NCBI GenBank assembly: GCA_977020255.1 | Contig: CDROCS010003621.1 | Span: 372,001 to 436,000 of the forward strand | Direction of reading: 5' to 3' | DNA length: 64,000 bases | Source of the DNA: Obrimoposthia wandeli | Taxonomy: Eukaryota | Shown: positions 10,101 to 13,100 of the stretch, piece by piece | Layout: each line of letters begins with the position of its first letter | How positions within the stretch are numbered: the first letter of the stretch is position 1 | Notes under the pieces: generated by a model | The model's database searches: none | Told to the model about the DNA's origin: nothing | The model's input: only the letters and a program-made list of their open reading frames with translations | Made by a program: the position numbers and the translations under genes

Positions 10101-13100
10101 CATTTTGAATGATATTATAAACAATAGAATCATTGAAAAATTAAGATTGGTCTATTTTTGTTATCAAAACAATTAATTATTAAGTGTGAATTTAACTGTA
10201 ACGGAATTTTAAATCAATTCGACTATTAATCTTAAGCAGGTATATTTTATTTGAATTTTAAGATTTTGTATAAAAAATAAGAATTGTAGATATTGTTAGT
10301 TTGTAAAATTCTAAAGATGAGTAGTCAAAAAGTAGTCAAATATCTTGTTGAATGCAAAAACGTTTGGAATATTTCGAAAGAATTTCGTAGACCAAGTAAG
10401 TATAATAAGTTAGTAGAAATGGACGTTTCCTTATATAAAAAAGGCTATTACTATAAAAATGCCACAAGAAAACAATCAAACACAGCCATTATTGATTACC
10501 GATTTCTTTTATCCAATATATGTTATTTTGAGTAATATGTACGTTTGTCAGTTGACAAGGGGCGACTTCTTGGCAGACGAGTTTCAAGAGATGATCAGTG
10601 GCGCCTCTGTGATATTTGCTAACAACTTTGCGTTCGGGCCAATGGTGGATCATCAACTTAAGAATAGGTTCACATCGCTGAAGGAAGGGGCCAAGATCAT
10701 CTCCAGCAAGGCGTTTTGTCCTCTCAAGTTCCGCATCACAGATCGCAACCTTGATGGTGAGTGACACTCTTGATTACTTTGTTATCAAACAATTGTCTTA
10801 AAAATGTCGACAGATTCCCGCGAATTTATAATTAATTTTCTTTAAAAATGCTAATTTATTGATAAAATATGCAAGACAGATTTAGTTTTATATCAGAAAT
10901 TATTCTAATGCTAATTAGTTCTTATGTTAGGGGGAATTCTTAGTTTTGGTATGTTTTTTGACATATTTATATAACTTGACTGATTTTGGTCCAATATCTC
11001 CTTACATTATTGTTACATTCATGAACTTATTTTTTGTCAAAAAGTGAAGTAATGTATCAGAAATAATAAAATTAGTTATAAAAAAGGTGTGTAATTAATT
11101 TTTAATTTAAATGCTTATTTGTAAAATACATATTTTATCATTTTTACTCCGTTTGTTGTTCTATATTGTTATGTTTCGTTGCTTTAAGCTATGTATTTTC
11201 GATTTCTTTTCGATTTTATTTGTTTCTATTGGTGATACAATTTGAGAACCAACCAATCAAAACGCAGTAAAAAGAAAATAAACCAATTGGAATAAGTAAT
11301 CAATAAAACTAGGAAACAATGTAGATCGGAAAGAGAAATAATCATGTATGGTGAATCAGTGGACCGATGATAGCAAAGCAAGTTGAGAGTAAGTCATCGT
11401 TGATCGTGCACGCAGATATTTGCTCCATTATGAGAGTCACCACCCGGGCTTGCCCCACCGGAAGAGTTTCCTGGACGTCCAACTCCATCACTTACTACGT
11501 CCAGGAAATAGACAGGTCCCAGGTTAGTGCGTACGAGCGTGTACGTGTGTCTCTGAGTGTCACTCTCTCTTTCTTGTGCATGTCATAAATGTTGACTAGG
11601 ATTCTGTGTTTTTTATTTATTTATGATAAATTGTCGTTAAATTGATTTACTAATGATTGCTAAATGAGTGGAAGTTATGTTTCTGTCTATTTATTTACAA
11701 TAAGCAGTAGTAATAATATTATCGTCTCTGCATCATTAGTCAGTCAATGTTTCTGTATGTGTGTGTTTGTGCATGCTGACTGGCCGCGTCGGTGCAGATA
11801 TTGGCTCCATCATGCGGGTAACCAGTCTCAGTGCTATGAAGGACGCTGTCTCGTGGACTTGCTCAGCATTCAGCTACTTCCTTCATCAAGTGGATCATTC
11901 TATGGTGAGTGATTGACTATCTGACCGGCCTAGTTGTGCATGCTGCATGCGGAGCACGTTTTCATGTTGATTTCCATCTTTACTTTATTCCCATTTAGTA
12001 AAATCAGTGATTCATTAAAATGTTGGAAAATATGGGAAAGATTTTTATGTAATAATAGGTTTAGAAGTCAATAGAATCATTCATAGGTGCTAACATGAGA
12101 AGCTATTTAAAAAACTGTACAGTAATTTATTGTTTCCATATTCAGTATTCAATGATGATCAACTTAAGCTAAATGTAAAGCTATATAATCCCCCTCCCCA
12201 AATAAAAAGGACGAATAAAAATGTAACATTAATTCATTAATACATAAATGTAAAAGTATAAAGATTTACATTTAGTTTTAAATTAAAAAAATATCTATTG
12301 AAAAAGTAGTTAGTAGTTTAAAAATGTTAAAAAAAATTAATAGCAGCAGTATTCATGTTGAATTATCAAGGGTTAATAATTAAAATTGCTTAAAATTAAG
12401 ATACAAATACAGATTAAGTTTGAATAAAATTATAAATAATTTTTTTTTCTAAATTTAAGAAAAATTTTAACTTTATTTTAAAAAATCCTTAAAGAAATAT
12501 AATTTATGTTTATTTTCAACCGATTATATTACTAATAAAGATTAAAAACAATTCTTTTATCCTCTTAATTTTTATTATTATATTTTAATTAGTTGCTTAA
12601 TAATGAAAGTAGTTTGAATGTTATATTAAATACGTTATACGTTTATGTTAACTATTATTTAGTAACAGTAAAAACATTAATAAACAATTCTTTTATCCTC
12701 TTAATTTTTATTATTATATTTTAATTAGTTGCTTAATAATGAAAGTAGTTTGAATGTTATATTAAATACGTTATACGTTTATGTTAACTATTATTTAGTA
12801 ACAGTAAAAACATGGTGATCTACCTCTGTGCTTAAGCTTGATAATCAGTGTAAAATTTCAATTATATTATGTATACTTTGAATATTAAACCATGGAGTTG
12901 GACAATTTGTGTCCAACAAAAAAATTAAAATGTTTGTTACTAACAAAAAATGTATTCAATTCAATATGTACAAAAAACCAATTAAATTTTTTTACGTTCA
13001 TATGCAACATAATATACGAGAAAAAGACCCCTTACATCTCTGCTTTACGTGTGTTTATGAATTCCCTATCAAAATCACACACAACATATTCAACTGATAT

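Follow-up and report, generated by a model that had tools for sequence, protein, structure and literature searches.

The exon pair of the DOT1L gene

How does an animal decide between two alternative versions of one exon, and do short motifs beside the two exons direct the choice? This question is raised by a DOT1L gene of Obrimoposthia wandeli, found in a stretch of 64,000 nt (GenBank assembly GCA_977020255.1, contig CDROCS010003621.1, positions 372,001 to 436,000 of the forward strand; hereafter the window, which is free of N stretches), where two homologous 107-nt exons, A and B, are accompanied by four copies of the hexamer TGCATG (UGCAUG in RNA), the motif bound by splicing factors of the RBFOX family. 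We propose, giving the idea a little less than an even chance, that these four motifs are functional intronic splicing elements of an old mutually exclusive pair of DOT1L exons, and that their likely reader is an RBFOX-family protein.

The + strand of the window, to which all coordinates below refer, codes for a DOT1L-type H3K79 methyltransferase. A constitutive exon of its catalytic domain (10552..10756), ending in FRITDRNLD plus one G, is 77-79% identical to DOT1L of Schistosoma, Opisthorchis, Paragonimus and Spirometra; the flatworm DOT1L exons matching it (77-87% identity) carry the domain PF08123, and the nearest relative found is a contig (L008) with 87% identity to this exon. The exon which follows is present in two copies, and two only, in the window: A, of an alpha-like type, at 11416..11522, and B, of a beta type, at 11798..11904 (both types are described below). 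The next constitutive exon, of 13 residues, lies at 13578..13616. Exons A and B have the same length and the same phase, their first bases are the last two of an Asp codon, which is followed by 35 residues, and both are open frames flanked by AG and GT. Three public sequencing runs, all from one sample, hold the stretch; two of them behave as genomic DNA and one, X3, is transcript-like. A single 2579-nt contig of X3 shows the joints 10755>11797, 11903>13577 and 13614>13762, all of them GT..AG, which link the upstream exon (10755/6) to exon B (11797/8) and exon B to the 13-residue exon and beyond. Exon B is therefore spliced in and is the main form in the X3 sample.

The two copies are 53% identical in DNA and 42% in protein. 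Silent sites between them are saturated (pS 0.80), with a pN of 0.37, and the guanine-plus-cytosine (GC) content of the exons (A, 0.52; B, 0.48; at third codon positions 0.69 and 0.56, respectively) stands out from the 21-29% of the surrounding introns. Since silent sites are saturated while pN is lower and the GC content is exon-like, both A and B have most likely been retained as coding sequence. Inclusion of either A alone or B alone preserves the reading frame; joining A to B leads to a stop 7 codons into B, and omission of both leads to a stop 26 codons past the junction. Both acceptors possess very poor pyrimidine tracts when compared with those of the neighbouring constitutive exons. 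The pair recognised in the earlier note, which had been made from these letters without database searches, is thus genuine: the copies are homologous and display the hallmarks of mutually exclusive exons in length, phase, splice sites, frame break and selection.

A cluster of UGCAUG motifs around exons A and B

TGCATG starts at positions 11577, 11770, 11937 and 11944, exactly where the earlier note had placed it, out of 15 occurrences on the + strand of the whole window. With splice sites taken from the sequence and from the spliced X3 contig, site 1 (UUGUGCAUG, 11574..11582) lies at +55 after exon A (end at 11522); site 2 (UUGUGCAUGCUG, 11767..11778) starts 28 nt 5' of the first base of exon B (11798) and stands 22 nt before its acceptor; and sites 3 and 4 (UUGUGCAUGCUGCAUG, 11934..11949) lie at +33 and +40 after exon B (end at 11904). 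All four are at most 60 nt from a splice site of A or B, and the only other GCATG on the + strand between 10000 and 15000 is found at 14729. The description of the motifs as bracketing the exon pair holds for exon B, but exon A is only followed by a motif, with zero sites upstream of it.

The expectation of about 0.06 copies in 400 nt, offered previously, is correct at 30% GC, but the local GC content is 41-50%; the estimates that follow put the expectation at 0.07-0.5 copies. Dinucleotide shuffles of the local 440-800 nt yield 0.47-0.55 copies and a probability of 0.0008-0.0014 for four or more, and a scan statistic over the whole window, with shuffles in 500-nt blocks, gives P = 0.003 for any such cluster. 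From the density in the remainder of the window, 0.07 TGCATG would be expected in the 400 nt of proximal flank in which 4 are observed. Three of the sites share the 9-mer TTGTGCATG (UUGUGCAUG in its RNA form), for which these are the only 3 matches in 64 kb on both strands (0.48 expected), whereas the fourth (CUGCAUG) lacks the UUG prefix; moreover, a 12-mer, TTGTGCATGCTG, is common to site 2 and to the stretch of sites 3 and 4, that is, before and after exon B (P = 0.0035). Clusters of four are likewise formed somewhere in the window by 59 other rare hexamers, mostly in tandem repeats, and the significance therefore rests on TGCATG having been named beforehand as a splicing motif. It is very unlikely that the TGCATG cluster is due to chance.

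The surroundings of the motifs are also distinctive. The 60-nt flanks of A and B match the exons in GC content (0.48-0.52); at 61-160 nt it falls to 0.24-0.28, and next to the constitutive exon 10552-10756 it amounts to 0.27-0.32. Such GC-rich 60-nt islands around A and B point to constrained flanks, which regulated exons usually have. GU-rich and CU-rich runs directly adjoin the motifs: CACUCUCUCUUUCUUG, in a CU-rich tract (11560-11573), and a GU-rich stretch (11539-11550) precede site 1, and site 2 is placed between GUAUGUGUGUGUUUG and the sequence CUGAC (11776..11780). The latter, whose A (11779) precedes the AG at 11796-11797 by 18 nt, is the best candidate for the branch point of exon B, judging from the usual distance between branch point and acceptor. 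GCACG, which has been listed as a secondary Rbfox motif (PMC11874969), occurs at 11408..11412, 4-8 nt before the acceptor of exon A, and again at 11954-11958, +50 after exon B; as putative RBFOX elements, these two copies are a weak lead.

Age and distribution of the exon pair

Two diverged tandem exons of 107 nt are present in Pinctada imbricata (L010), Mactra antiquata (L011), Pecten maximus (L012) and a mollusc-like ENA contig (L009). In these loci the alpha exon (…LSPLRGAVSWTCNPVTY…DRTM) comes first and the beta exon (…LSPLSGAVSWTGKAFSY…DRTL) second, 345-1293 nt apart, and it is precisely in this alpha/beta exon that RefSeq/GenBank isoforms of Pecten, Dreissena and Sinanodonta differ. A single, B-like exon is found in Opisthorchis felineus, Sparganum proliferum and a Schistosoma-like contig. 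A tree of the 36 residues groups B with the exons of these parasitic flatworms (support 100/99) and those with the mollusc beta exons (96/88), while exon A falls on the alpha side with a long branch (90/83); a separate duplication giving rise to A and B is not rejected by the approximately unbiased (AU) test (p = 0.32). The best reading of these sequences is that the duplication would be older than the split between molluscs and flatworms, this animal, which the affinity of its exon B marks as a flatworm, having kept both exons and the Neodermata having lost alpha. The exon pair is thus not specific to one lineage, and is older and more widespread than had been assumed in the earlier note. No match to open frames of the exon A type was obtained in the protein collection, and a search for literature on mutually exclusive exons in DOT1L or grappa returned no paper describing them.

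Three peculiarities were met among the relatives. A gene model of Pinctada imbricata (P0168; L010:12465-13025) reads alpha and then beta in series (…DRAM-VN-IGTIMHV…), and is most likely a misannotated mutually exclusive pair. In Schistosoma turkestanicum (OX103976.1) a beta-like exon occurs twice, at L002:3667-3774 and L002:13256-13363, 9.6 kb apart, with an identical peptide and near-identical intron flanks; this doubling, which has no connection with the old alpha/beta pair, reflects either an intragenic duplication of very recent date or an error of assembly. Finally, the top match of the representative search (P0001, 757 aa) possesses two complete DOT1 catalytic domains in tandem.

A possible RBFOX-controlled switch

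Clusters of UGCAUG next to alternative exons are, in themselves, well known. The layout resembles that of known exon pairs under RBFOX control; we infer the binding of RBFOX, the direction of the switch and its tissue specificity, and the neuron- or muscle-specific switch imagined in the earlier note is pure conjecture. In a review of the Fox-1 family, (U)GCAUG is described as repressing an exon from its upstream flank and activating it from its downstream flank, with multiple copies acting more strongly; as one of the most specific and conserved splicing motifs of animals; and as frequently involved in mutually exclusive choices, such as those in alpha-actinin, FGFR2 and egl-15 (PMC2777236). 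A member of the family, Smed-rbfox-1, has been reported in a planarian (PMC4978528), which makes an RBFOX factor plausible in flatworms.

Four known systems offer comparisons. In the mutually exclusive pair 5A/5B of Caenorhabditis elegans egl-15, controlled by FOX-1/ASD-1 and SUP-12, one exon carries UGCAUG beside GUGUG in its upstream flank, close to the branch point, and is thereby repressed, so that the other is used (PMC2777236). The counterpart here would be the site at 11770, which has GUAUGUGUGUGUUUG immediately before it and CUGAC, 18 nt from the acceptor, immediately after it; in egl-15, however, GUGUG follows UGCAUG and the repressed exon is the upstream one, whereas here the GU run precedes the motif. 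The 7a/7b pair of C. elegans unc-32, which is controlled by the RBFOX family and the CELF protein UNC-75, is also similar, its upstream exon being weak, its downstream exon the default, and UGCAUG following the latter: exon 7a is chosen in neurons by means of UGCAUG after 7b and a U/G-rich CELF site between the exons, UNC-75 binding UUGUUGUGUUGU, and its authors noted that the mode of action varies from case to case (PMC3585155). That pair belongs to another gene and another phylum, and the present one is accompanied by four UGCAUG and by a predicted helix. Vertebrate FGFR2 IIIb/IIIc and alpha-actinin NM/SM likewise have RBFOX sites between or around exclusive exons, with copies adding strength (PMC2777236); these cases are proven and their elements are conserved among vertebrates, whereas conservation failed here in a test at the distance of phyla. 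Lastly, in the footprints of Rbfox and LASR, GU-rich and CU-rich motifs lie 1-10 nt from bound GCAUG (PMC11874969), a multipart pattern of GCAUG plus GU/CU which CUCUCUUUCUUGUGCAUG and GUGUGUGUUUGUGCAUG fit, although LASR is a mammalian complex.

From these comparisons the following course of events may be imagined. Exon B, which is of the type kept in all flatworm relatives examined and is the one seen in RNA, would be the default, and exon A a regulated minor choice. As the pyrimidine tracts of both are very poor, both exons should need helpers. The reader of the motifs would most likely be an RBFOX-family protein, probably acting with a partner that binds GU-rich or CU-rich RNA. From its position at +55 after exon A this protein would help to define A; its binding to the site at 11770, adjoining the candidate branch point CUGAC, would block B in the manner of egl-15. 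Sites 3 and 4 are ambiguous, and may either favour B, following the simple positional rule, or favour the joining of A to the next exon, for which unc-32 is a precedent. In addition, base pairing between sites 2 and 3 could build a 19-bp helix and so conceal the branch point of B, in which case protein binding and folding may compete.

Motif conservation and expression of the pair

Several observations weigh against the RBFOX proposal. The conservation of the motifs in orthologous introns, which the earlier note had set as a check, was not found: neither the four molluscs nor the parasitic flatworms have the cluster. In a pre-set count of intronic TGCATG at most 100 nt from the four splice sites, the pooled molluscs have 2 copies against 0.60 expected (P = 0.12), compared with 4 against 0.07 in the window; GCATG fares similarly (3 against 1.29 expected, P = 0.14), and flanks of 300 nt are no better. 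The individual mollusc matches (+54 after alpha in L009, +26 after beta in Pinctada, and a GCATG at +25 after beta in Pecten) are within chance. The loci of parasitic flatworms contain no intronic TGCATG within 400 nt, their nearby copies being exonic and derived from Met-His-Val codons. Between the window and the four molluscs, intron flanks could not be aligned, and shared 6- and 7-mers did not exceed chance. The contig of the nearest relative found (L008, 2.8 kb) runs for about 890 nt past the upstream exon and does not reach the pair. In the sequences compared, the cluster appears specific to this lineage. Such non-conservation weakens the proposal but does not refute it, because the comparisons were made at phylum distance or with genes that have lost exon A.

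An exonic UGCAUG(U), arising from Ile-Met-His-Val codons (ATG-CAT-G), recurs at the same place of alpha and/or beta in five loci (L001, L003, L009, L010 and L011); the exons of the window code for Met-Arg-Val and are devoid of it. A TGCATG at '-91', apparently shared by Opisthorchis and Sparganum, was discarded as it belongs to such Met-His-Val codons and is not intronic.

The same direction is taken by the RNA data, in which exon A has zero depth in X3, the one transcript-like run; since contigs lose rare variants, however, its absence there is not proof that A is unused. Of the two forms, X3 RNA shows exon B and not exon A, and isoforms of both types are annotated in the bivalves Pecten, Dreissena and Sinanodonta. 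Furthermore, thermodynamic folding of the intron predicts that each of the four sites is largely paired, which would hinder a protein that binds single strands. The rule invoked earlier, activation from downstream and repression from upstream, does stand in the Fox-1 review, but it makes opposite predictions for exon B. ACTAAT, too, which had been listed with the motifs and is confirmed at 11649-11654, is badly placed: as a branch point for exon B it was rejected, being about 145 nt from the acceptor with intervening AGs (from about 11663), and such a role seems unlikely. It lies within one arm of an inverted repeat of the intron between A and B (11641-11657 / 11732-11748).

This inverted repeat, 17 nt long and 88% complementary, has its arms 74 nt apart and carries TACTAAT in one of them; in the fold predicted for the intron it makes a hairpin.

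RNA structure and rival explanations

A predicted helix encloses the whole of exon B. Its 5' arm (11771..11790) extends over site 2 and takes in the candidate branch point together with the weak pyrimidine tract, and its 3' arm (11923..11943), beginning 18 nt past the donor of exon B, covers site 3. The 19 bp are arranged in blocks of 6, 5, 5 and 3, with 1-nt bulges at 11937, 11931 and 11787; the helix is present in both the minimum-energy and the centroid folds, with a pair probability of about 0.97 in a context of 720 nt. GCAUGC is its own reverse complement. The duplex of the 70-nt flanks reaches -47.6 kcal/mol, compared with -36.2 +/- 4.4 kcal/mol for dinucleotide shuffles (P = 0.012), and with the UGCAUG cores held fixed and the rest shuffled P stays at 0.004-0.006, so that pairing beyond the motif, over 13 bp, contributes. 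In duplex shuffles, the five remaining flank pairings did not exceed chance. We regard the helix as a credible rival of, or partner to, protein binding, with modest support from modelling, and as such it too counts against a simple RBFOX switch.

Systems of docking sites and selectors, in which RNA structures compete, are known in arthropod exon clusters (Dscam, 14-3-3xi), and by likeness to them pairing near exclusive exons could decide the choice here. Unlike in those systems, no common docking site was found, and only the flanks of exon B pair significantly: a docking/selector model was rejected, as the pairings A-down/B-up, A-up/B-down, A-up/B-up and A-down/B-down were no better than shuffles. 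Separately, a segment of exon A (11477-11497) is complementary to one in the downstream intron (12883-12903), 1.4 kb away, with a perfect 12-bp core (GTCCAACTCCAT / ATGGAGTTGGAC); about 0.2 such matches are expected by chance.

Could RNA structure do the work by itself, without RBFOX? The arms would then hide the branch point and pyrimidine tract of B and loop the exon out, so that A is used. The two copies of UGCAUGC would arise naturally as the core of the helix, owing to the self-complementarity of GCAUGC, and the presence of the helix in both folds, together with a complementarity of the flanks of exon B which exceeds chance even with the cores fixed and is not matched by the five remaining pairings, agrees with such a role. 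Nevertheless, B is the form seen in RNA, which implies that the helix is not dominant in the sampled material; the significance is modest after six pairs tested, the fold of the whole region having a z of only -1.7; site 1 and the second copy at 11944 are left unexplained; and no comparable helix is found in the mollusc loci, the beta-exon duplex of Mactra (P = 0.017) being a loose pairing absent from the local fold. On balance we consider looping by structure alone unlikely. A combined mechanism, in which an RBFOX-type protein and the 19-bp helix compete for UGCAUGC on both sides of B and thereby choose between two ancient DOT1L beta-hairpins that predate the mollusc-flatworm split, is an improbable elaboration.

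It is also conceivable that UUGUGCAUG is read by another factor or combination of factors, such as a CELF/Bruno-type protein, a GU binder of the SUP-12/RBM24 type or a lineage-specific protein, the likeness to an RBFOX site being partial or coincidental. The extra UUG common to three sites, which the RBFOX hexamer does not specify, would fit such a reader, as would the GU-rich context with GUAUGUGUGUGUUUG before site 2 and the precedent of UNC-75 binding in the unc-32 pair (PMC3585155). We nonetheless hold it to be rather doubtful: few splicing motifs are as specific and as conserved in animals as UGCAUG (PMC2777236), the fourth site does without the UUG prefix, and the UUG in the arm after B is also explained by pairing in the helix. 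Alternatively, the cluster might have no function and be a by-product of chance or history, for instance a leftover of the exon duplication or a consequence of the local GT/GC-rich composition. Consistent with this are the 0.5 copies still expected under a conservative dinucleotide null, the 59 other rare hexamers that cluster by four in the window, and the lack of the cluster in mollusc and parasitic flatworm orthologues. However, the silent sites of A and B are saturated and their flanks share nothing else, so that a neutral 9-mer would not survive three times; the 64 kb contain no further copy of the 9-mer; and the flanks are exon-like in GC within an intron of 21-29% GC. A functionless cluster thus has, in our estimation, a low probability. 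For RBFOX control itself the balance is mixed, with a non-random cluster, apparently constrained flanks and a layout of a published type on one side, and the lack of conservation and the helix of sites 2 and 3 as an alternative on the other.

Other features of the window

In the intron between A and B, a match to the Rfam family SCARNA7 (11618-11821) scored 25.2 bits against a gathering score of 65 and was taken as chance. The AT-rich intron after exon B contains a tandem duplication of a 136-nt unit, 96% identical (12533-12804), and one DNA run shows small length differences near it, at 12285-12475. Farther downstream, a tandem repeat of about 118 nt (26047-26440), with one TGCATG per unit (26107, 26225 and 26344), adjoins a fragment of a piggyBac-like transposase (open reading frame 25837-26070), and an open reading frame at 28798-29445 contains a P-loop (GPSGSGKTHF) typical of the packaging ATPase of Maverick/Polinton elements.

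Significance for the H3K79 methyltransferase

Exons A and B match residues 289-320 and 287-320 of human DOT1L, respectively (human PDB chains being used for residue numbering only), and the 36 residues swapped correspond to human 286-321. In the human enzyme, a loop with Arg278 and Arg282 anchors the protein to the acidic patch of the nucleosome, Ile290 forms part of a hydrophobic patch, and the helix 321-332 binds ubiquitin (PMC6546062). The A/B segment follows the arginine loop, includes Ile290 and precedes the ubiquitin-binding helix, the start of which is coded by the next exon (13578-13616). Ile290 is kept in both A and B, the two differing chiefly in the loop of the hairpin and in the strand preceding the helix.

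To our knowledge, DOT1L is the only H3K79 methyltransferase. The conservation of the exon choice from molluscs to a flatworm suggests, as far as sequence comparison can tell, two functionally different enzymes. The hairpin at stake lies between the acidic-patch arginine anchor and the ubiquitin-binding helix, and, if protein and helix indeed compete around exon B, cell types could carry H3K79 methyltransferases that differ in their response to the nucleosome or to H2B ubiquitin. Should the UGCAUG cluster be a working switch, it would provide a simple handle on which cells use which form of the enzyme.

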